Below, in pieces: positions 1-17,000 of a stretch of DNA of 17,321 nucleotides. The DNA lies in assembly GCA_964019335.1 (NCBI GenBank), contig OZ025772.1, positions 1-17,321 on the forward strand, read 5' to 3'. The notes below the pieces were generated by a model. It did not search any database. It was not told the DNA's origin and saw only the letters and a program-made list of their open reading frames with translations. The first letter of the stretch is position 1. Each line of letters begins with the position of its first letter. This DNA is from Diplonema japonicum. Its lineage: Eukaryota > Protista > Euglenozoa: Diplonemea. The position numbers and the translations under genes were made by a program.

Positions 1-107
1 GTGCATTGGTGCCATTGCCTGTACTACTAGATATGCCCCTGTTCCTATCCTTCGTACTTCTCCAGATTAGTGGTTTATTTAGTTCTCATGATTCCACTAC
101 TTCTGGT

Positions 108-1484
108 ATCACTACCCTTCTCAGGATACCTCTGTACTACTGACAGCACTAGATATCATAGTTAGCACAGCATGTATCCTCTGTGCTCTATGCACTGCAC
201 AGTACGTATTCCCTATGTACATACAGTATGTATTGGTGTGCATGATATCATATACAGTACATGGCACTGCATCCTGTGCATTGGTGCCATTGCCTGTGCT
301 ACTAGGATACCTCCGTACTTCCCTAGTTCCATACTCCTGGTATTCTCTGAGTTAGTACTTCTAGTATTCCACAGGTTCCTCCACTCTCAGGATACCTGTG
401 CTACTGATATCATACTATGTACTAGCCATGATATCTATGACAGTACTACATGCATCCATTGCACATGTAGCACTACACAGGATATATGCTCATGCATACT
501 GTGTGTGTACTGGTGGTAGGATATGCTCTATGCCACACACTCAGTGTATTGGTGGCATTGCCTGTGTTAGTACTTCTAGTATTCCACTGGTTCCATACTC
601 CTGTGTTCTCAGGGAATGGTGCCACTAGATATCTACTGCACAGCTAACATGGCATCTCCTTCTGTACTATGCCATGGTATGTACTACAGGATGTACTACA
701 TGCATCCATTGCACATGTAGCACTACACAGGATATATGCTCATGCATACTGTGTGTGTATTGGTGTGCATGATATCATATACAGTGCATGGCACCACCAC
801 AGCTACTGGTGGTATTACCTGTGTTACCAGGGATGTACTACTTCAGGGATTCCCCAAGTTAGTGGTTCTCCTGATTCCACTGCTTCTCTGGGATCACTAC
901 CCTTCTCAGGATACCTCTGTACTACTCCTAGCACTAGATATCATAGTTAGCACAGTATGTATCCCCTGTGCTCTATGCACTACATACTATGTATTCCCTA
1001 TGTACATACAGTATGTATTGGTGTGCATGATATCATATACAGTACATGGCACTGCATCCTGTGCATTGGTGCCATTGCCTGTGCTACTAGGATACCTCCG
1101 TACTTCCCTAGTTCCATACTCCTGGTATTCTCTGAGTTAGTACTTCTAGTATTCCACAGGTTCCTCCACTCTCAGGATACCTGTGCTACTGATATCATAC
1201 TATGTACTAGCCATGATACCTATGACAGTACTACATGCATCCATTGCACATGTAGCACTACACAGGATATATGCTCATGCATACTGTGTGTGTACTGGTG
1301 GTAGGATATGCTCTATGCCACACACTCAGTGTATTGGTGGCATTGCCTGTGTTAGTACTTCTAGTATTCCACTGGTTCCATACTCCTGTGTTCTCAGGGA
1401 ATGGTGCCACTAGATATCTACTGCACAGCTAACATGGCATCTCCTTCTGTACTATGCCATGGTATGTACTACAGGATGTACTAC
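108..1484. repeat. Internal direct duplication of a ~590-bp block with 785-bp period (non-coding; present in each unit)
   Basis: 108-699 is nearly identical to 893-1484 (ORFs at 172/957 and 398/1183 duplicated). The intervening ~190 bp and ~5683-5799 are built from partial copies of the same block. Confidence 0.9.
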
Positions 1485-1850
1485 TGATATCATACTATCT
1501 ATATTGGGGATACATCCTCTGTGTGTCTGCCCATACTTAGGATAGTACTGCTTAGAGGTATTCATGCTTAGTTAGTATCCTTACCAGCATGTTCTCCTCA
1601 TTATGAGATACATGGTTGGTAGAGTATACCGCCACCATCCTCATGAGATGGTATGGCTAGAGAGCACACCACATCCCTGGGATGTATTGGTGTCTGTACT
1701 CCCAGGATATACATGCCTGTACTCTCTGTACTACTCCTAGCACTACATGCATTACCTGTGTTAGCTAGGAATGGCATGAGTACTTACCATTGTACTTACT
1801 ACAGGATGTACTACTACTGATAGTACTGGTAGCACTGATACGATGGTAGT

Positions 1851-1985
1851 GATGGTGACTGTGTTCCTGGCAGAGCTAACAGCACATCATTAGCATGTAC
1901 TCATTCAGGAGTACTCTACGGACAGTGCTCAGAGATATGTGGTAGCTTACATGGCTTCATGCCATTGGTAGTAGCATGAGCATGA
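1851..1985 (+). CDS. cox2: Gene module: C-terminal piece of cytochrome c oxidase subunit 2 (CuA site); no own start or TAA/TAG stop
   Basis: Translates [42 protein letters not shown](W)A(W). This matches the Cox2 motifs D-x-x-PGR-x-N and G[18 protein letters not shown] with the CuA ligands C, E, C, H, M. Boundaries approximate. Confidence 0.95.
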
Positions 1986-2015
1986 GTACATTACCTCCGT
2001 ACTACTCCTAGCACT

Positions 2016-2306
2016 ATGGATGTACTACTGATAGTACTGGTAGCACTACATGCATTGGCATGAGTACTTACCATTGTACTTACTGATAGTACGACAGGCA
2101 CAGCTGTAGGTATCATGGACATGATGTGCTTAGCTATGGTCAGCATCAAGAGTGTGCTCTTGGGACTGCACTCCTGGTTACCTGATGCTATGGAAGGACC
2201 CACTGCAGTGAGTGCTGTCATTCATGCAGCTACCTTGGTTGTAGCAGGAGTAGTATGGATAGCACGTACGCTGTGCTCTCTGTGAGTATGTAGCACTAGC
2301 ATTGCT
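2016..2306 (+). CDS. nad5: Gene module: internal piece of NADH dehydrogenase subunit 5
   Basis: Translates [15 protein letters not shown](W)[73 protein letters not shown](W)VCSTSIA. The core 2148-2267 matches the Nad5/NuoL signature KSAQ[31 protein letters not shown]. The 5' end is uncertain (either ~2016 or ~2091). Confidence 0.95.
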
Positions 2307-2694
2307 TACAGTATATACTACTGATAGTACTGGTAGCACTACATGCATTGGCATGAGTACTTACCATTGTACTTACTACAGTAGATACGGTGGTGGTGGT
2401 GGCATGAGTAGATGAGGTAGCCATCAGGAGAGTCAGGGACTCTTCGTGGTAAGCCTAGTGCTCCACTCATGTGCATCCCTCAGAAGACACAGGTTGTGCC
2501 TAGAAGGAACACCAGTACTTCTACAGGATGATGTACTAGCACAGGCCTGCATCACTGCTGGTGCTTCCACCTGCATTGCTTAGCTATGATACTACTGCTA
2601 ACAGTGTCTCCTTACTGATAGTACTATGGATATACTACTGATAGTACTGGTAGCACTACATGCATTGGCATGAGTACTTACCATTGTACTTACT
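2023..2694 (+). repeat. 62-bp dispersed direct repeat, 3 exact copies (2023-2084, 2316-2377, 2633-2694) plus a permuted copy at ~1773-1836
   Basis: tactactgatagtactggtagcactacatgcattggcatgagtacttaccattgtacttact read directly at each position. Confidence 0.9.
2402..2518 (-). CDS. cox1: Gene module: internal piece of cytochrome c oxidase subunit 1 (helix XI and PRR loop)
   Basis: The minus strand translates VLVFLLGTTCVF(W)GMHMSGALGLPRRVPDSPDGYLIYSC, matching Cox1 consensus F-x-G-x-N-x-TFFPMHFLG-x-x-GMPRR-x-PDYPD-x-Y. There is an in-frame TGA at 2482-2480. Boundaries approximate. Confidence 0.9.
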
Positions 2695-3287
2695 ACAGTA
2701 TATACTACTGATAGTACTATGGATATACTTCCCTAGAGATAGCACACCATCATCCTCATGACTAGGATATGGTATGAGATACTCTCTGTAGTACTGGTGG
2801 TATTCCCACAGGCATTGTTGCCTAGGATGTACACCACCACCATTCCCTTCTCTAGGGATAATGGAGTAGCTACAGTATGAGGTACATGGTTGGTAGAGTA
2901 TACCGCCACCATCCTCATGACTAGGATATGAGGTACATGGTTACTAGAGTATACTGCCAGCATACTCTGTAGATGGTATGGCTAGAGAGCACAGCTGCTC
3001 TTCTAGTAGATAATACCTCTACTCTGTACATCCCATGATCCATGCATGACATGATCTATGGTAATGATACCGTTAGTGGTATGCTCCATGATGTCATGGC
3101 TAGAGAGATGGTATGTTCTCCCACTCTCTGGATATGCTGGCATCCTTAGGATGTACCATCATGCCATGATATGATAATACTACTACTATGATAAGTAGGC
3201 ATACACACTGTGTTAGTGCTAGTACATGTATATGATATACTGTATGTACTACTACACAGAGTACTTACATGATAAGTAGTATGCTGG

Positions 3288-3872
3288 TATCTCTACAGAC
3301 ACTCTCAGGATGTGGTGGTGTCTAGAGATGGTATCCAAGCTAGGGATCCTGGGATCTAGAGGTTGGGTCTCCACCCCTGGGATCCTGGGATCTAGAGAAG
3401 GGGTCCCCATCCCCAGGATGATGTCATGAGGGGATGAGTAGAGCTATGATACCATTAATACAGTTAGTACATCATTATGTAATACTAGTATTATGCATGT
3501 ACATATATCCTCCGTATGCATGGGATAGATATATGATACATACACAGTACTTACATAGTATGTAATGATAGTATTATAGTTATCTCTACAGACACTCTCA
3601 GGATGTGGTGGTGTCTAGAGATGGTATCCAAGCTAGGGATCCTGGGATCTAGAGGTTGGGTCTCCACCCCTGGGATCCTGGGATCTAGAGAAGGGGTCCC
3701 CATCCCCAGGATGATGTCATGAGGGGATGAGTAGGGTTATGATACCATTAATACAGTTAGTACATCATTATGTAATACTAGTATTATGCATGTACATATA
3801 TCCCCCGTATACATGGGATAGATATATGATACATACACAGTACTTACATAGTATGTAATGATGGTATTATAG
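3288..3872. repeat. 293-bp tandem duplication (2 copies), each with an internal gggatcctgggatctagag doublet
   Basis: tatctctacagacactctcagg starts at 3288 and 3581. The copies differ by only a few substitutions. Confidence 0.92.
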
Positions 3873-3933
3873 GTGGTAATAGGAGGGTATATTGAGGGGT
3901 CCCAGAAGGGCTGGATAAGGGGGCATGCTAGGG

Positions 3934-4200
3934 GGTTTACGTCCCTGTAGCCCTCCGATTCCTGAACCCCTTCAGGGCTGTATCGGGTGAATTCGTAGAA
4001 TTACCCCGTAGGAGCCCTGGAATGGTTTACGTCCCTGTAGCCCTCCAATATTGGGACACCTCTCTGGGCTCCTACGGGTGATTTCTGCAAATTAACCCGC
4101 TACGTCCCAGAGAATATCTACGTCCCTGTAGCCCTCCAATTCCTGAAACCCTTGTGGGACACTACGTAAGAATTATGCAAATTACCTCGCTATATCCCCC
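3934..4200. repeat. Diverged ~90-bp tandem repeat (3 copies) with inverted-repeat cores; fourth copy at ~4881-4966
   Basis: tacgtccctgtagc at 3938, 4028, 4119 and 4885. Each is followed by an imperfect palindrome such as cgggtgaattc-gta-gaattaccccg. Confidence 0.85.
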
Positions 4201-4218
4201 ACGCGCGCGCGCGCGCGT
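4201..4218. repeat. (CG)8 perfect palindrome a(cg)8t
   Basis: acgcgcgcgcgcgcgcgt read directly. Confidence 0.95.
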
Positions 4219-4966
4219 AAGGATAACTGTTAGGATAGTAAGGTGCCCCCAAGGTGTCCCCAAAGGGGTAGGGTATAGGACCCCCAATATAAGGGGGTAC
4301 AGAGAGGGGGGGTTAGGATAAGGGTCTAATACATAGGGGTTAGTAGACAGTGTGTAGACAAGGGGTTAGTTAGTAGACAGTGTGTAGGGGCTAATACCAC
4401 AGTATACAAGGGATAATGTACTACCCCATACCAGTGGTTACATACTCTCTGCTAACAGTGTGTGTCTCTGGTAACAGTGTGTGTCTCTGCTAACAGGTAC
4501 TTACTACAGGCCCCCATACGTGCCCTGCTATGGAATCCCCTGTTATGAGATACCACTACCAGACACCCTACTTGTGCTACCCCCCAGAGAACACACCCTT
4601 CTGCTGGTGTTCCTGTTAGTTGGTGTTATCCCCAGATGTATAGCTACACCCTTCTGGAGCACTGCTTGTGCTACTACATGTATTACTACACACTGTCTGT
4701 GTTACTCTCTGTGTTAGTGTGTAGTGTGTTACTGTACTTAGCTAAACAGTGTGCTTCCTCTTGTATGTTATGGATATCAGTACCTCTGGATGTACTCCCC
4801 ACAGGCCTCCGTACCTCTGCTAACAGGTCCTAGCATCCCTAATCCCAGGATCTAAGGGTTCCGAGGGGTCCCAATCTAGGGGTTTACGTCCCTGTAGCTA
4901 TGCAATTCCTGAAACCCTTGTGGGACACTACGGATGAATTCGTAGAATTACCCCGCTATATCCCCC

Positions 4967-4984
4967 ACGCGCGCGCGCGCGCGT
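4967..4984. repeat. Second (CG)8 perfect palindrome
   Basis: Identical tract with the same flanks (gctatatccccc...aagga). Confidence 0.95.
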
Positions 4985-7623
4985 AAGGACATGAGTCCAT
5001 ATACAGGTCTCTACACCCTAATCCCCAGGTTAAAGCACCCTTTCTAAGGATACCTCTGTACAGCACACCCGTTATCAGGGGTTACACACTGTCTGCTGTT
5101 CTCTGATAATGTGTAGTTACTGTACTTACTGTTATCCCATGCATACTGTGGTATTACGTACTTCACACTGTCTATGTTCCTGTGTTATGGTACTTAGCTA
5201 AACAGTGTGTCTGTACTACCACCTGTATATGCTCCCCACAGGTATCCCCAGATGTATAGCCACACCCTTATGGGATGATGTACTTACTATTAACATGTAC
5301 TTCCATAGTTACTTACTTAGATACACTGTGTGAATACTGGTGCAACAACATATTCACTGTGTTACACTGTCTGTACTAATGGTAGCACTACATGTCCCTA
5401 ATACTACAGTATACAAGGGATAATGTACTACCTACATATTACTAGATATACCCTGTACACCTAGATACCCCTTTTAGGCCTGAAATGAGGTCCGAGGCTC
5501 ACCGGGCCTTTTCCCAAAAAGGGGATATCATTTCTCAGAATTGGTCTGGGACCATTCCCTTGAGTCTTCGAATAGAATGAGGTACCTACCAATAAAGTGG
5601 TATTTTGGGTATGCCCATAATCACCCCATATGACCTATCCTCTAGACACCCTATTATCTATGGTAGTACTATATGCCTCCATTGTGCTCTATGCACTACA
5701 TACTATGTATTCCCTACGTACATACAGTATGTATTGGTGTGCATGATATGGTATACAGTACATGGCACTGCATCCTGTGCATTGGTGCCATTGCCTGTAC
5801 TACTAGATATGCCCCTGTTCCTATCCTTCGTACTTCTCCAGATTAGTGGTTTATTTAGTTCTCATGATTCCACTACTTCTGGTATCACTACCCTTCTCAG
5901 GATACCTCTGTACTACTGACAGCACTAGATATCATAGTTAGCACAGCATGTATCCTCTGTGCTCTATGCACTGCACAGTACGTATTCCCTATGTACATAC
6001 AGTATGTATTGGTGTGCATGATATCATATACAGTACATGGCACTGCATCCTGTGCATTGGTGCCATTGCCTGTGCTACTAGGATACCTCCGTACTTCCCT
6101 AGTTCCATACTCCTGGTATTCTCTGAGTTAGTACTTCTAGTATTCCACAGGTTCCTCCACTCTCAGGATACCTGTGCTACTGATATCATACTATGTACTA
6201 GCCATGATATCTATGACAGTACTACATGCATCCATTGCACATGTAGCACTACACAGGATATATGCTCATGCATACTGTGTGTGTACTGGTGGTAGGATAT
6301 GCTCTATGCCACACACTCAGTGTATTGGTGGCATTGCCTGTGTTAGTACTTCTAGTATTCCACTGGTTCCATACTCCTGTGTTCTCAGGGAATGGTGCCA
6401 CTAGATATCTACTGCACAGCTAACATGGCATCTCCTTCTGTACTATGCCATGGTATGTACTACAGGATGTACTACATGCATCCATTGCACATGTAGCACT
6501 ACACAGGATATATGCTCATGCATACTGTGTGTGTATTGGTGTGCATGATATCATATACAGTGCATGGCACCACCACAGCTACTGGTGGTATTACCTGTGT
6601 TACCAGGGATGTACTACTTCAGGGATTCCCCAAGTTAGTGGTTCTCCTGATTCCACTGCTTCTCTGGGATCACTACCCTTCTCAGGATACCTCTGTACTA
6701 CTCCTAGCACTAGATATCATAGTTAGCACAGTATGTATCCCCTGTGCTCTATGCACTACATACTATGTATTCCCTATGTACATACAGTATGTATTGGTGT
6801 GCATGATATCATATACAGTACATGGCACTGCATCCTGTGCATTGGTGCCATTGCCTGTGCTACTAGGATACCTCCGTACTTCCCTAGTTCCATACTCCTG
6901 GTATTCTCTGAGTTAGTACTTCTAGTATTCCACAGGTTCCTCCACTCTCAGGATACCTGTGCTACTGATATCATACTATGTACTAGCCATGATACCTATG
7001 ACAGTACTACATGCATCCATTGCACATGTAGCACTACACAGGATATATGCTCATGCATACTGTGTGTGTACTGGTGGTAGGATATGCTCTATGCCACACA
7101 CTCAGTGTATTGGTGGCATTGCCTGTGTTAGTACTTCTAGTATTCCACTGGTTCCATACTCCTGTGTTCTCAGGGAATGGTGCCACTAGATATCTACTGC
7201 ACAGCTAACATGGCATCTCCTTCTGTACTATGCCATGGTATGTACTACAGGATGTACTACTGATATCATACTATCTATATTGGGGATACATCCTCTGTGT
7301 GTCTGCCCATACTTAGGATAGTACTGCTTAGAGGTATTCATGCTTAGTTAGTATCCTTACCAGCATGTTCTCCTCATTATGAGATACATGGTTGGTAGAG
7401 TATACCGCCACCATCCTCATGAGATGGTATGGCTAGAGAGCACACCACATCCCTGGGATGTATTGGTGTCTGTACTCCCAGGATATAGCCTGTACTCTCT
7501 GTACTACTCCTAGCACTACATGCATTACCTGTGTTAGCTAGGAATGGCATGAGTACTTACCATTGTACTTACTACAGGATGTACTACTACTGATAGTACT
7601 GGTAGCACTGATACGATGGTAGT

Positions 7624-7758
7624 GATGGTGACTGTGTTCCTGGCAGAGCTAACAGCACATCATTAGCATGTACTCATTCAGGAGTACTCTACGGACAGTG
7701 CTCAGAGATATGTGGTAGCTTACATGGCTTCATGCCATTGGTAGTAGCATGAGCATGA
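7624..7758 (+). CDS. cox2: cox2 C-terminal module, copy 2
   Basis: Same sequence as 1851-1985. Confidence 0.93.
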
Positions 7759-7788
7759 GTACATTACCTCCGTACTACTCCTAGCACT

Positions 7789-8082
7789 ATGGATGTACTA
7801 CTACTGATAGTACTGGTAGCACTACATGCATTGGCATGAGTACTTACCATTGTACTTACTGATAGTACGACAGGCACAGCTGTAGGTATCATGGACATGA
7901 TGTGCTTAGCTATGGTCAGCATCAAGAGTGTGCTCTTGGGACTGCACTCCTGGTTACCTGATGCTATGGAAGGACCCACTGCAGTGAGTGCTGTCATTCA
8001 TGCAGCTACCTTGGTTGTAGCAGGAGTAGTATGGATAGCACGTACGCTGTGCTCTCTGTGAGTATGTAGCACTAGCATTGCT
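7789..8082 (+). CDS. nad5: nad5 internal module, copy 2 (one extra in-frame CTA codon)
   Basis: Same as 2016-2306 with a 3-nt insertion at ~7800. Confidence 0.93.
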
Positions 8083-8177
8083 TACAGTATATACTACTGA
8101 TAGTACTGGTAGCACTACATGCATTGGCATGAGTACTTACCATTGTACTTACTACAGTAGATACGGTGGTGGTGGTG

Positions 8178-8294
8178 GCATGAGTAGATGAGGTAGCCAT
8201 CAGGAGAGTCAGGGACTCTTCGTGGTAAGCCTAGTGCTCCACTCATGTGCATCCCTCAGAAGACACAGGTTGTGCCTAGAAGGAACACCAGTAC
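8178..8294 (-). CDS. cox1: cox1 internal module, copy 2
   Basis: Same sequence as 2402-2518. Confidence 0.88.
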
Positions 8295-11200
8295 TTCTAC
8301 AGGATGATGTACTAGCACAGGCCTGCATCACTGCTGGTGCTTCCACCTGCATTGCTTAGCTATGATACTACTGCTAACAGTGTCTCCTTACTGATAGTAC
8401 TATGGATATACTACTGATAGTACTGGTAGCACTACATGCATTGGCATGAGTACTTACCATTGTACTTACTACAGTATATACTACTGATAGTACTATGGAT
8501 ATACTTCCCTAGAGATAGCACACCATCATCCTCATGACTAGGATATGGTATGAGATACTCTCTGTAGTACTGGTGGTATTCCCACAGGCATTGTTGCCTA
8601 GGATGTACACCACCACCATTCCCTTCTCTAGGGATAATGGAGTAGCTACAGTATGAGGGATAATGGAGTAGCTACAGTATGAGGTACATGGTTGGTAGAG
8701 TATACCGCCACCATCCTCATGACTAGGATATGAGGTACATGGTTACTAGAGTATACTGCCAGCATACTCTGTAGATGGTATGGCTAGAGAGCACAGCTGC
8801 TCTTCTAGTAGATAATACCTCTACTCTGTACATCCCATGATCCATGCATGACATGATCTATGGTAATGATACCGTTAGTGGTATGCTCCATGATGTCATG
8901 GCTAGAGAGATGGTATGTTCTCCCACTCTCTGGATATGCTGGCATCCTTAGGATGTACCATCATGCCATGATATGATAATACTACTACTATGATAAGTAG
9001 GCATACACACTGTGTTAGTGCTAGTACATGTATATGATATACTGTATGTACTACTACACAGAGTACTTACATGATAAGTAGTATGCTGGTATCTCTACAG
9101 ACACTCTCAGGATGTGGTGGTGTCTAGAGATGGTATCCAAGCTAGGGATCCTGGGATCTAGAGGTTGGGTCTCCACCCCTGGGATCCTGGGATCTAGAGA
9201 AGGGGTCCCCATCCCCAGGATGATGTCATGAGGGGATGAGTAGAGCTATGATACCATTAATACAGTTAGTACATCATTATGTAATACTAGTATTATGCAT
9301 GTACATATATCCTCCGTATGCATGGGATAGATATATGATACATACACAGTACTTACATAGTATGTAATGATAGTATTATAGTTATCTCTACAGACACTCT
9401 CAGGATGTGGTGGTGTCTAGAGATGGTATCCAAGCTAGGGATCCTGGGATCTAGAGGTTGGGTCTCCACCCCTGGGATCCTGGGATCTAGAGAAGGGGTC
9501 CCCATCCCCAGGATGATGTCATGAGGGGATGAGTAGGGTTATGATACCATTAATACAGTTAGTACATCATTATGTAATACTAGTATTATGCATGTACATA
9601 TATCCCCCGTATACATGGGATAGATATATGATACATACACAGTACTTACATAGTATGTAATGATGGTATTATAGGTGGTAATAGGAGGGTATATTGAGGG
9701 GTCCCAGAAGGGCTGGATAAGGGGGCATGCTAGGGGTTTACGTCCCTGTAGCCCTCCGATTCCTGAACCCCTTCAGGGCTGTATCGGGTGAATTCGTAGA
9801 ATTACCCCGTAGGAGCCCTGGAATGGTTTACGTCCCTGTAGCCCTCCAATATTGGGACACCTCTCTGGGCTCCTACGGGTGATTTCTGCAAATTAACCCG
9901 CTACGTCCCAGAGAATATCTACGTCCCTGTAGCCCTCCAATTCCTGAAACCCTTGTGGGACACTACGTAAGAATTATGCAAATTACCTCGCTATATCCCC
10001 CACGCGCGCGCGCGCGCGTAAGGATAACTGTTAGGATAGTAAGGTGCCCCCAAGGTGTCCCCAAAGGGGTAGGGTATAGGACCCCCAATATAAGGGGGTA
10101 CAGAGAGGGGGGGTTAGGATAAGGGTCTAATACATAGGGGTTAGTAGACAGTGTGTAGGGGCTAATACCACAGTATACAAGGGATAATGTACTACCCCAT
10201 ACCAGTGGTTACATACTCTCTGCTAACAGTGTGTGTCTCTGGTAACAGTGTGTGTCTCTGCTAACAGGTACTTACTACAGGCCCCCATACGTGCCCTGCT
10301 ATGGAATCCCCTGTTATGAGATACCACTACCAGACACCCTACTTGTGCTACCCCCCAGAGAACACACCCTTCTGCTGGTGTTCCTGTTAGTTGGTGTTAT
10401 CCCCAGATGTATAGCTACACCCTTCTGGAGCACTGCTTGTGCTACTACATGTATTACTACACACTGTCTGTGTTACTCTCTGTGTTAGTGTGTAGTGTGT
10501 TACTGTACTTAGCTAAACAGTGTGCTTCCTCTTGTATGTTATGGATATCAGTACCTCTGGATGTACTCCCCACAGGCCTCCGTACCTCTGCTAACAGGTC
10601 CTAGCATCCCTAATCCCAGGATCTAAGGGTTCCGAGGGGTCCCAATCTAGGGGTTTACGTCCCTGTAGCTATGCAATTCCTGAAACCCTTGTGGGACACT
10701 ACGGATGAATTCGTAGAATTACCCCGCTATATCCCCCACGCGCGCGCGCGCGCGTAAGGACATGAGTCCATATACAGGTCTCTACACCCTAATCCCCAGG
10801 TTAAAGCACCCTTTCTAAGGATACCTCTGTACAGCACACCCGTTATCAGGGGTTACACACTGTCTGCTGTTCTCTGATAATGTGTAGTTACTGTACTTAC
10901 TGTTATCCCATGCATACTGTGGTATTACGTACTTCACACTGTCTATGTTCCTGTGTTATGGTACTTAGCTAAACAGTGTGTCTGTACTACCACCTGTATA
11001 TGCTCCCCACAGGTATCCCCAGATGTATAGCCACACCCTTATGGGATGATGTACTTACTATTAACATGTACTTCCATAGTTACTTACTTAGATACACTGT
11101 GTGAATACTGGTGCAACAACATATTCACTGTGTTACACTGTCTGTACTAATGGTAGCACTACATGTCCCTAATACTACAGTATACAAGGGATAATGTACT

Positions 11201-13395
11201 ACCTACATATTACTAGATATACCCTGTACACCTAGATACCCCTTTTAGGCCTGAAATGAGGTCCGAGGCTCACCGGGCCTTTTCCCAAAAAGGGGATATC
11301 ATTTCTCAGAATTGGTCTGGGACCATTCCCTTGAGTCTTCGAATAGAATGAGGTACCTACCAATAAAGTGGTATTTTGGGTATGCCCATAATCACCCCAT
11401 ATGACCTATCCTCTAGACACCCTATTATCTATGGTAGTACTATATGCCTCCATTGTGCTCTATGCACTACATACTATGTATTCCCTACGTACATACAGTA
11501 TGTATTGGTGTGCATGATATGGTATACAGTACATGGCACTGCATCCTGTGCATTGGTGCCATTGCCTGTACTACTAGATATGCCCCTGTTCCTATCCTTC
11601 GTACTTCTCCAGATTAGTGGTTTATTTAGTTCTCATGATTCCACTACTTCTGGTATCACTACCCTTCTCAGGATACCTCTGTACTACTGACAGCACTAGA
11701 TATCATAGTTAGCACAGCATGTATCCTCTGTGCTCTATGCACTGCACAGTACGTATTCCCTATGTACATACAGTATGTATTGGTGTGCATGATATCATAT
11801 ACAGTACATGGCACTGCATCCTGTGCATTGGTGCCATTGCCTGTGCTACTAGGATACCTCCGTACTTCCCTAGTTCCATACTCCTGGTATTCTCTGAGTT
11901 AGTACTTCTAGTATTCCACAGGTTCCTCCACTCTCAGGATACCTGTGCTACTGATATCATACTATGTACTAGCCATGATATCTATGACAGTACTACATGC
12001 ATCCATTGCACATGTAGCACTACACAGGATATATGCTCATGCATACTGTGTGTGTACTGGTGGTAGGATATGCTCTATGCCACACACTCAGTGTATTGGT
12101 GGCATTGCCTGTGTTAGTACTTCTAGTATTCCACTGGTTCCATACTCCTGTGTTCTCAGGGAATGGTGCCACTAGATATCTACTGCACAGCTAACATGGC
12201 ATCTCCTTCTGTACTATGCCATGGTATGTACTACAGGATGTACTACATGCATCCATTGCACATGTAGCACTACACAGGATATATGCTCATGCATACTGTG
12301 TGTGTATTGGTGTGCATGATATCATATACAGTGCATGGCACCACCACAGCTACTGGTGGTATTACCTGTGTTACCAGGGATGTACTACTTCAGGGATTCC
12401 CCAAGTTAGTGGTTCTCATGATTCCACTACTTCTGGTATCACTACCCTTCTCAGGATACCTCTGTACTACTCCTAGCACTAGATATCATAGTTAGCACAG
12501 TATGTATCCCCTGTGCTCTATGCACTACATACTATGTATTCCCTATGTACATACAGTATGTATTGGTGTGCATGATATCATATACAGTACATGGCACTGC
12601 ATCCTGTGCATTGGTGCCATTGCCTGTGCTACTAGGATACCTCCGTACTTCCCTAGTTCCATACTCCTGGTATTCTCTGAGTTAGTACTTCTAGTATTCC
12701 ACAGGTTCCTCCACTCTCAGGATACCTGTGCTACTGATATCATACTATGTACTAGCCATGATACCTATGACAGTACTACATGCATCCATTGCACATGTAG
12801 CACTACACAGGATATATGCTCATGCATACTGTGTGTGTACTGGTGGTAGGATATGCTCTATGCCACACACTCAGTGTATTGGTGGCATTGCCTGTGTTAG
12901 TACTTCTAGTATTCCACTGGTTCCATACTCCTGTGTTCTCAGGGAATGGTGCCACTAGATATCTACTGCACAGCTAACATGGCATCTCCTTCTGTACTAT
13001 GCCATGGTATGTACTACAGGATGTACTACTGATATCATACTATCTATATTGGGGATACATCCTCTGTGTGTCTGCCCATACTTAGGATAGTACTGCTTAG
13101 AGGTATTCATGCTTAGTTAGTATCCTTACCAGCATGTTCTCCTCATTATGAGATACATGGTTGGTAGAGTATACCGCCACCATCCTCATGAGATGGTATG
13201 GCTAGAGAGCACACCACATCCCTGGGATGTATTGGTGTCTGTACTCCCAGGATATACATGCCTGTACTCTCTGTACTACTCCTAGCACTACATGCATTAC
13301 CTGTGTTAGCTAGGAATGGCATGAGTACTTACCATTGTACTTACTACAGGATGTACTACTACTGATAGTACTGGTAGCACTGATACGATGGTAGT

Positions 13396-13530
13396 GATGG
13401 TGACTGTGTTCCTGGCAGAGCTAACAGCACATCATTAGCATGTACTCATTCAGGAGTACTCTACGGACAGTGCTCAGAGATATGTGGTAGCTTACATGGC
13501 TTCATGCCATTGGTAGTAGCATGAGCATGA
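13396..13530 (+). CDS. cox2: cox2 C-terminal module, copy 3
   Basis: Same sequence as 1851-1985. Confidence 0.93.
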
Positions 13531-13560
13531 GTACATTACCTCCGTACTACTCCTAGCACT

Positions 13561-13851
13561 ATGGATGTACTACTGATAGTACTGGTAGCACTACATGCAT
13601 TGGCATGAGTACTTACCATTGTACTTACTGATAGTACGACAGGCACAGCTGTAGGTATCATGGACATGATGTGCTTAGCTATGGTCAGCATCAAGAGTGT
13701 GCTCTTGGGACTGCACTCCTGGTTACCTGATGCTATGGAAGGACCCACTGCAGTGAGTGCTGTCATTCATGCAGCTACCTTGGTTGTAGCAGGAGTAGTA
13801 TGGATAGCACGTACGCTGTGCTCTCTGTGAGTATGTAGCACTAGCATTGCT
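13561..13851 (+). CDS. nad5: nad5 internal module, copy 3
   Basis: Same sequence as 2016-2306. Confidence 0.93.
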
Positions 13852-13946
13852 TACAGTATATACTACTGATAGTACTGGTAGCACTACATGCATTGGCATG
13901 AGTACTTACCATTGTACTTACTACAGTAGATACGGTGGTGGTGGTG

Positions 13947-14063
13947 GCATGAGTAGATGAGGTAGCCATCAGGAGAGTCAGGGACTCTTCGTGGTAAGCC
14001 TAGTGCTCCACTCATGTGCATCCCTCAGAAGACACAGGTTGTGCCTAGAAGGAACACCAGTAC
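13947..14063 (-). CDS. cox1: cox1 internal module, copy 3
   Basis: Same sequence as 2402-2518. Confidence 0.88.
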
Positions 14064-17000
14064 TTCTACAGGATGATGTACTAGCACAGGCCTGCATCAC
14101 TGCTGGTGCTTCCACCTGCATTGCTTAGCTATGATACTACTGCTAACAGTGTCTCCTTACTGATAGTACTATGGATATACTACTGATAGTACTGGTAGCA
14201 CTACATGCATTGGCATGAGTACTTACCATTGTACTTACTACAGTATATACTACTGATAGTACTATGGATATACTTCCCTAGAGATAGCACACCATCATCC
14301 TCATGACTAGGATATGGTATGAGATACTCTCTGTAGTACTGGTGGTATTCCCACAGGCATTGTTGCCTAGGATGTACACCACCACCATTCCCTTCTCTAG
14401 GGATAATGGAGTAGCTACAGTATGAGGTACATGGTTGGTAGAGTATACCGCCACCATCCTCATGACTAGGATATGAGGTACATGGTTACTAGAGTATACT
14501 GCCAGCATACTCTGTAGATGGTATGGCTAGAGAGCACAGCTGCTCTTCTAGTAGATAATACCTCTACTCTGTACATCCCATGATCCATGCATGACATGAT
14601 CTATGGTAATGATACCGTTAGTGGTATGCTCCATGATGTCATGGCTAGAGAGATGGTATGTTCTCCCACTCTCTGGATATGCTGGCATCCTTAGGATGTA
14701 CCATCATGCCATGATATGATAATACTACTACTATGATAAGTAGGCATACACACTGTGTTAGTGCTAGTACATGTATATGATATACTGTATGTACTACTAC
14801 ACAGAGTACTTACATGATAAGTAGTATGCTGGTATCTCTACAGACACTCTCAGGATGTGGTGGTGTCTAGAGATGGTATCCAAGCTAGGGATCCTGGGAT
14901 CTAGAGGTTGGGTCTCCACCCCTGGGATCCTGGGATCTAGAGAAGGGGTCCCCATCCCCAGGATGATGTCATGAGGGGATGAGTAGAGCTATGATACCAT
15001 TAATACAGTTAGTACATCATTATGTAATACTAGTATTATGCATGTACATATATCCTCCGTATGCATGGGATAGATATATGATACATACACAGTACTTACA
15101 TAGTATGTAATGATAGTATTATAGTTATCTCTACAGACACTCTCAGGATGTGGTGGTGTCTAGAGATGGTATCCAAGCTAGGGATCCTGGGATCTAGAGG
15201 TTGGGTCTCCACCCCTGGGATCCTGGGATCTAGAGAAGGGGTCCCCATCCCCAGGATGATGTCATGAGGGGATGAGTAGGGTTATGATACCATTAATACA
15301 GTTAGTACATCATTATGTAATACTAGTATTATGCATGTACATATATCCCCCGTATACATGGGATAGATATATGATACATACACAGTACTTACATAGTATG
15401 TAATGATGGTATTATAGGTGGTAATAGGAGGGTATATTGAGGGGTCCCAGAAGGGCTGGATAAGGGGGCATGCTAGGGGGTTTACGTCCCTGTAGCCCTC
15501 CGATTCCTGAACCCCTTCAGGGCTGTATCGGGTGAATTCGTAGAATTACCCCGTAGGAGCCCTGGAATGGTTTACGTCCCTGTAGCCCTCCAATATTGGG
15601 ACACCTCTCTGGGCTCCTACGGGTGATTTCTGCAAATTAACCCGCTACGTCCCAGAGAATATCTACGTCCCTGTAGCCCTCCAATTCCTGAAACCCTTGT
15701 GGGACACTACGTAAGAATTATGCAAATTACCTCGCTATATCCCCCACGCGCGCGCGCGCGCGTAAGGATAACTGTTAGGATAGTAAGGTGCCCCCAAGGT
15801 GTCCCCAAAGGGGTAGGGTATAGGACCCCCAATATAAGGGGGTACAGAGAGGGGGGGTTAGGATAAGGGTCTAATACATAGGGGTTAGTAGACAGTGTGT
15901 AGACAAGGGGTTAGTTAGTAGACAGTGTGTAGGGGCTAATACCACAGTATACAAGGGATAATGTACTACCCCATACCAGTGGTTACATACTCTCTGCTAA
16001 CAGTGTGTGTCTCTGGTAACAGTGTGTGTCTCTGCTAACAGGTACTTACTACAGGCCCCCATACGTGCCCTGCTATGGAATCCCCTGTTATGAGATACCA
16101 CTACCAGACACCCTACTTGTGCTACCCCCCAGAGAACACACCCTTCTGCTGGTGTTCCTGTTAGTTGGTGTTATCCCCAGATGTATAGCTACACCCTTCT
16201 GGAGCACTGCTTGTGCTACTACATGTATTACTACACACTGTCTGTGTTACTCTCTGTGTTAGTGTGTAGTGTGTTACTGTACTTAGCTAAACAGTGTGCT
16301 TCCTCTTGTATGTTATGGATATCAGTACCTCTGGATGTACTCCCCACAGGCCTCCGTACCTCTGCTAACAGGTCCTAGCATCCCTAATCCCAGGATCTAA
16401 GGGTTCCGAGGGGTCCCAATCTAGGGGTTTACGTCCCTGTAGCTATGCAATTCCTGAAACCCTTGTGGGACACTACGGATGAATTCGTAGAATTACCCCG
16501 CTATATCCCCCACGCGCGCGCGCGCGCGTAAGGACATGAGTCCATATACAGGTCTCTACACCCTAATCCCCAGGTTAAAGCACCCTTTCTAAGGATACCT
16601 CTGTACAGCACACCCGTTATCAGGGGTTACACACTGTCTGCTGTTCTCTGATAATGTGTAGTTACTGTACTTACTGTTATCCCATGCATACTGTGGTATT
16701 ACGTACTTCACACTGTCTATGTTCCTGTGTTATGGTACTTAGCTAAACAGTGTGTCTGTACTACCACCTGTATATGCTCCCCACAGGTATCCCCAGATGT
16801 ATAGCCACACCCTTATGGGATGATGTACTTACTATTAACATGTACTTCCATAGTTACTTACTTAGATACACTGTGTGAATACTGGTGCAACAACATATTC
16901 ACTGTGTTACACTGTCTGTACTAATGGTAGCACTACATGTCCCTAATACTACAGTATACAAGGGATAATGTACTACCTACATATTACTAGATATACCCTG

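Follow-up and report, generated by a model that had tools for sequence, protein, structure and literature searches.

Pieces of cox2, nad5 and cox1 in the cassette of a tandemly repeated, multi-module mitochondrial chromosome of Diplonema japonicum

The window, the whole 17,321-nt stretch of DNA that was analysed, is made up of a 5769-5776-nt unit that occurs three times head to tail, matching the ~5.8-kb unit proposed earlier from the letters of the DNA. Approximately 5 kb of this unit is a repeat-rich, non-coding backbone common to sister circles; the cassette zone occupies ~0.8 kb. The features of the first unit copy and their evidence were as follows, those given as unstranded having no assigned strand.

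1-5776, unstranded: copy 1 of the unit of a ~5.77-kb mitochondrial chromosome, from the tandem period; the next copies run from near 5777 and 11548
1772-1800 and 1816-1836, unstranded: partial copies of the spacer repeat, from blastn against all circle units
1837-2620, unstranded: cassette zone, the sole part of the unit not common to contigs C125 and C127, from a DNA search and a k-mer map
about 1837-2017, 2085-2306 and 2392-2606, unstranded: three unique islands with one gene piece each, from a k-mer uniqueness map
~1854 to ~1993, plus strand: last module of cox2 (cox2-m4 in the D. papillatum numbering) with the Cu-A site PGR..., from PF00116; further copies at 7627-7766 and 13399-13538
2027-2084, plus strand: spacer repeat, full copy 1, outside the mature nad5 RNA, from blastn against all circle units
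2101-2287, plus strand: internal nad5 module of 187 nt, ND5 residues ~205-267, from NuoL, ND5 chains and an RNA junction; further copies at 7877-8063 and 13646-13832
2320-2377, plus strand: spacer repeat, full copy 2, 100% identical over 58 nt
2411-2524, minus strand: cox1 module 8 (cox1-m8), 114 nt or 38 codons (VEVLVFLLGTTCVFWGMHMSGALGLPRRVPDSPDGYLI), from COX1 chains and loose ends of contigs from run X8; further copies at 8187-8300 and 13956-14069
2637-2694, plus strand: spacer repeat, full copy 3, which closes the cassette zone, from blastn against all circle units

The cassette was the same letter for letter in 3/3 tandem copies. Differences between copies amounted to a few small indels and substitutions, confined to the repeat-rich non-coding backbone. 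Relative to copy 1, copy 2 (7612 onward) has an additional TAC at ~2022 and 26 additional nt after 2853; it is short of a single nucleotide at 3931 and of the 30 nt at 4339-4368. A few other differences of this kind exist among the copies. These differences may represent heteroplasmy of repeat-unit number. The TAC variant at ~2022 was present too in an independent run, X13. Internal repeats of the backbone (102-1186, 3288-3872 and 4374-4416/5132-5174) included a direct repeat of ~785 nt, a 293-nt unit present twice in tandem and, at 4374-4416/5132-5174, a pair of 43-nt inverted repeats with 715 nt between them. From the tandem repetition, we infer that the chromosome is a circle.

The sequence-only reading had recognised three gene pieces packed into ~700 bp on both strands. 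All three were found where it had placed them, cox2 and nad5 on the plus strand and cox1 on the minus strand, and searches bore out their identities: Pfam and family models confirmed cox2 and nad5, and COX1 chains together with RNA junctions confirmed cox1. The cox2 piece at 1839-1976 (+) matched PF00116 with an E-value of 8.7e-15, over profile positions 78-117 of 120, and also matched the CoxB model TIGR02866 at 9.7e-9. The preceding cox2 piece lies on contig C125, where it covers profile positions 40-82 (77-118 for the window piece in the same comparison) and ends ...SADVIHSWALPSLGMK at C125:3938; the window piece carries on from there as GDCVPGR...YGQCSEICG. The ends of cox2-m4 are approximate, the 5' end being taken from homology and the 3' end from the fall in RNA depth. 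After the cox2 piece, there was no in-frame stop before 2325, the first in-frame TAA/TAG, and TGA codons occurred in the tail at 1977 and 1983. The stop codon of cox2-m4 would be completed by polyadenylation after the TA at 1992-1993, yielding UAA.

The nad5 piece at 2094-2282 (+) matched PF00361 (Proton_antipo_M) at 2e-10. Its assignment to nad5 rather than to nad4 or nad2 follows from the NuoL model, at 1.3e-16 vs 3e-4 for NuoM, and from ND5 chains, matched over residues ~219-262 at 2.6e-14 vs ~2e-3 or weaker for ND4. The module is probably m4 or m5. In the whole-assembly scan, a Pfam match spanned 1992-2318, crossing two TGA codons, and prompted the reading of the 58-nt spacer as nad5 coding sequence. 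Because the RNA junction at 2101 falls beyond the 3' end of the spacer, that reading was rejected.

The cox1 piece is a minus-strand open stretch at 2390-2563 containing two TGA codons. Pfam gave no match to either of its halves free of TGA, 30 and 23 aa in length, and the whole-assembly COX1 Pfam scan missed the piece. Compared with the sequences of solved structures, the 30-aa half matched COX1 chains in 10/10 matches (best E 0.011), all at bovine residues 428-451 and with the motif MH.LG..GMPRR.PDYPD. These chain matches, together with the RNA junctions described below, settle the identity of the piece as cox1. The module starts and ends on codon borders, and an in-frame TGA, read as Trp, lies at 2480-2482, inside the stretch delimited by RNA.

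The assembly holds 132 records (62,535,345 bases), of which 11, C122-C132, are mitochondrial contigs totalling 216,743 bases. The corresponding genome note describes peDipJapo1.1, built from PacBio HiFi reads, as 121 scaffolds spanning 62.30 Mb, 118 of them chromosomal, and calls the mitochondrial genome multipartite (PMC13598402). Each of C122-C132 is a tandem concatemer, the repeat period ranging over 5.2-8.5 kb. In a whole-unit DNA search, C125 and C127 matched the backbone of the window at 87-99% over unit positions 1-1836 and 2621-5776. Thus, sister contigs with the same backbone and other cassettes, as expected for a chromosome of this type, were found. Other parts of the genes were distributed over these contigs. 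Ordered by Pfam position, cox1 pieces lie on C127 (37-91), C123 (76-176), C126 (157-233) and C124 (301-352), with further cox1 pieces on the window's contig, C128, and on C132; cox2 pieces lie on C125 and C128. Six-frame Pfam scans of the 62.5-Mb assembly detected no contiguous cox1, cox2 or nad5, the matches being short pieces on small contigs. Full-length versions of the three genes, which would have spoken for displaced or degraded fragments, were therefore found nowhere in the assembly, and the same scans found no further part of the three genes on the window's contig, as had been claimed for the unit.

Several sister contigs were mixed. Successive ~5-6-kb units of C124, C126, C129, C130 and C132 share the backbone and differ in their cassette sets: four sets in C126, four in C132 (two of them common to C130) and two each in C124, C129 and C130, for roughly 18 distinct circles. 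Unlike these, the window's own contig is uniform. The mixed concatemers could be real hetero-multimeric mtDNA or artefacts made by the assembler through the shared backbone. The notion of one kind of circle per contig was rejected, as the partner of the window's cox1 module lay on a later unit of C132 and mixed concatemers were found.

The cassette was present in twenty public runs from eight studies, none of which was recorded as RNA. The runs with a near-identical cassette, from eight studies, bore nine organism labels; this likely reflects holobiont or endosymbiont labelling together with carry-over of very abundant mtDNA between libraries. Four runs were compared over 1600-2900. X1 and X7 behaved like DNA, with depth highest on the shared repeats. 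X8 behaved like RNA: its depth peaked not on the repeats but on the cox2 module (44,000-198,000 over 1864-1995 vs 5,000-15,000 alongside, falling after ~1995) and on the cox1 module (19,000-72,000), and was lower on the flanks. Judged by this depth behaviour and by contigs at module ends, X8 would appear to be RNA. The X8 data are Logan contigs, in which true transcript ends, strand and abundance are invisible and minor variants have been dropped. In X13, a probable DNA run of 2018 under another organism label, depth was zero at 2128-2303, in the nad5 island; the islands of cox2 and cox1 were covered by collinear contigs, and C>T changes were present at 1998 and 2388. Either a filter effect or a variant circle could account for the gap over the nad5 island.

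Two kinds of X8 contigs were informative at the module ends. Some ran collinearly across them (records 26 and 29; 1778-1884 and 2492-2656), as expected of precursors. Others left the genome exactly at 2101, 2411 and 2524, and all three did so in frame. The pieces and loose ends were translated separately, never as a joined sequence. One contig, record 27, covers 2101-2287 and then continues upstream for 29 nt that are foreign to the window and in frame; this sequence translates as AVVRTAHAS. At the cox1 module, the loose end at 2524 encodes the tail of an upstream partner, GYRMPGWLGR (bovine GYTLNDTWAK), and that at 2411 the head of a downstream partner, NAISTTG (bovine NTISSMG). In a pattern search of the whole assembly, the downstream partner was located at C132:12691-12712, with an exact match of 22/22. 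Past this point, the reading frame of C132 runs NAISTTGGLCTVLLAIALML...; homology to Cox1 resumes there, and the DNA just upstream is non-coding. The X8 contig is thus a direct RNA junction between two contigs, linking window position 2411 to the start of cox1-m9. The expectation that RNA would join these pieces to modules on other circles was borne out here by an exact, in-frame join of 2411 to C132:12691. The island bearing the start of cox1-m9, C132:12625-13287, is 663 nt long, occurs once in the assembly and has room for further modules.

The borders supported by RNA are thus 2101-2287 for nad5 and 2524 to 2411 (-) for cox1. Partners upstream of nad5 and of cox1-m8 (in the latter case cox1-m7) were absent from the assembly, even in an editing-tolerant search (T read as C/T, G as A/G, with ≤2 further mismatches), and we conclude that the circles of these two partners are missing from the assembly. 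Of the 30 chromosomes on record for the species, about 12 would be missing in all. Judged by reading frame and homology, the junctions at 2101 and 2524 are probably real module joins. Among the X8 loose ends listed, none corresponded to the junction of the window's cox2 piece with that on C125. Over the modules, the contigs of this one RNA-like run showed no base differences from the DNA, and none of the three junctions had a U-tract; the editing types named in the sequence-only reading (U-appendage, C-to-U, A-to-I) were thus not seen at these modules. Because diplonemid editing affects particular sites, this is no argument against assigning the chromosome to the diplonemid type.

These data bear on a rival reading, in which a normal mitochondrial genome resides elsewhere and the pieces are dead remnants of mitochondrial DNA, either NUMT-like or degraded copies. 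The pieces are short and have neither start nor stop codons, and some of their neighbours are not in the assembly, as might be expected of such remnants. However, the assembly holds no contiguous cox1, cox2 or nad5 from which they could derive, their motifs are intact and identical in all copies, and the contig that bears them is a tandem array standing alone, for which sister circles exist. Moreover, RNA-like contigs link the pieces in frame to neighbouring parts, one of them mapped to C132. The idea of dead fragments is therefore largely refuted, and we assign it a negligible probability.

The joining of gene pieces in RNA is also what would be seen if they were flanked by discontinuous group I or II introns of the plant and algal type, the halves of which pair in trans. 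Indeed, the flanks of consecutive cox2 modules pair at -42.1 kcal/mol, with z about -3 vs shuffles. However, a non-cognate pair of flanks reached -40.3 vs -42.1, equally strong, and the duplex that cox2-m3 on C125 forms through its 3' flank with the 5' flank of the window's cox2-m4 is attributable to shared palindrome-rich repeats rather than to recognition of a partner. An Rfam scan of the full unit with E up to 1 returned five chance-level matches far below gathering scores, and no group I or II intron. The sequence-only reading, which had seen no intron-like flanks of either group, stood in this respect, given the null Rfam scan and flank pairing that was not specific to partners. In addition, unique flanking sequence extends for only ~16-110 nt, and published work on diplonemids reports no introns (PMC3035467). 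Split introns are thus a highly improbable explanation.

Diplonemid mitochondria are an extreme case of genes in pieces. As described in the diplonemid literature, each module would be transcribed together with its flanks, the module transcripts would then be trimmed at both ends, and the trimmed modules would be ligated to their cognate neighbours by protein machinery, without introns. As the modules are internal, no start codon is needed.

The presence of three modules in one array might instead be a product of assembly, the modules being distributed one per circle in the cell, as is the case in D. papillatum. Other contigs are mixed concatemers, whose units were joined across the shared backbone by the assembler or in the DNA itself, and the spacers, being repeats, could give rise to mis-joins. 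Against this, the array is repeated identically three times, and short-read contigs from other studies cross from the spacers into the islands: records 12 and 13 of X13 span 1804-2044 and 2358-2648, and X1 and X7 cover all 30 bins. The gaps between islands, at ~60-90 nt, are far below the length of a HiFi read. Finally, multi-module cassettes of ~1 kb are reported to be the norm in this species, on the basis of independent short reads (PMC7049700). We consider a chimeric array very unlikely, and the three modules are taken below as neighbours on one chromosome.

The 58-nt spacer borders every unique island on all 5-6-kb circles (C124-C130, the window's C128 among them, and C132), and was not detected by blastn in the larger circles C122, C123 and C131. 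It always has the orientation of the backbone, whatever the strand of the module, and lies 16-112 nt from module ends. With its orientation constant and its distance variable, the spacer is more easily reconciled with a role at the level of DNA, as a scar of recombination or duplication, than with a signal for RNA processing. Tentatively, the spacer may be a recombination site that stacks single-module cassettes and swaps them, the mixed concatemers being the resulting hetero-multimers; we regard this as a possible, if rather unlikely, explanation. If true, recombination at the spacer would provide a concrete mechanism for the shuffling of modules in diplonemid mtDNA.

The mitochondrial chromosomes of D. 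papillatum, circular and 6-7 kb in size, combine a constant region with a small cassette, and cox1 is divided into nine modules and cox2 into four (PMC3035467). Its cox1-m8 measures 110 nt and is bordered by 118 and 23 nt of unique sequence; its cox2-m4, the last of four, is 125 nt long (PMC3035467). The window's cox1 module is similar, with 114 nt and the same asymmetry, the unique flank being long on the 5' side and short on the 3' side, and the use of TGA for Trp and the lack of introns are shared with the class A and B chromosomes of that species (PMC3035467). The breakpoints are conserved among the Diplonemidae (PMC7049700); together with the module sizes in D. papillatum, this identifies the window pieces as cox1-m8 and cox2-m4. 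Unlike in D. papillatum, the circle in the window carries three modules, each from a different gene, and uses both strands for them. In this it resembles D. ambulator, a different species, in which Valach et al. 2017 described multi-module cassettes and arrays that combine modules of different genes at random, in either orientation, with ~100 bp of non-coding DNA between them (PMC5658414). In contrast to the window, a recurrent short inter-module spacer is not described in the main text of that article.

The closest counterpart is the set of chromosomes reported for D. japonicum YPF1604 by Kaur et al. 2020. According to that work (PMC7049700), the 30 chromosomes fall into 5 classes, and 23 are multi-module; the cassettes have a median of ~1 kb, the module numbers and breakpoints are as in D. 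papillatum, and the modules are trans-spliced. The short reads of that work could not cross the repeats, so that whole chromosomes and their sizes were left unassembled, whereas the full 5.77-kb unit is given here. There, flanking motifs are defined as exceeding 100 bp, by which measure the 58-nt inter-module spacer falls inside a single cassette. The window fits every trait reported there, and the strain is very probably the same, YPF1604.

Taken together, the window is very likely a tandem read-out of a circular multi-module mitochondrial chromosome of D. japonicum, a marine protist; its plus strand carries cox2-m4 and an internal nad5 module, and its minus strand cox1-m8. The earlier proposal of a diplonemid-type, trans-spliced chromosome held, in view of the sister circles, the consecutive modules on other contigs and the RNA-level junction with C132. 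Its further suggestion of a possibly uncharacterised diplonemid did not: the organism is very probably D. japonicum YPF1604, and a 2020 publication had already described its chromosomes as predominantly multi-module (PMC7049700). Species, layout and trans-splicing are therefore all on record, and the window belongs to a known system and introduces no new principle. The full circle sequence, the 58-nt spacer and the mixed concatemer contigs are minor new details. The value of the locus is as a resource: a complete multi-module circle from long reads, with exact, RNA-supported borders for two modules. Its islands, punctuated by a short class-wide repeat, could aid the study of how cassettes move between circles.
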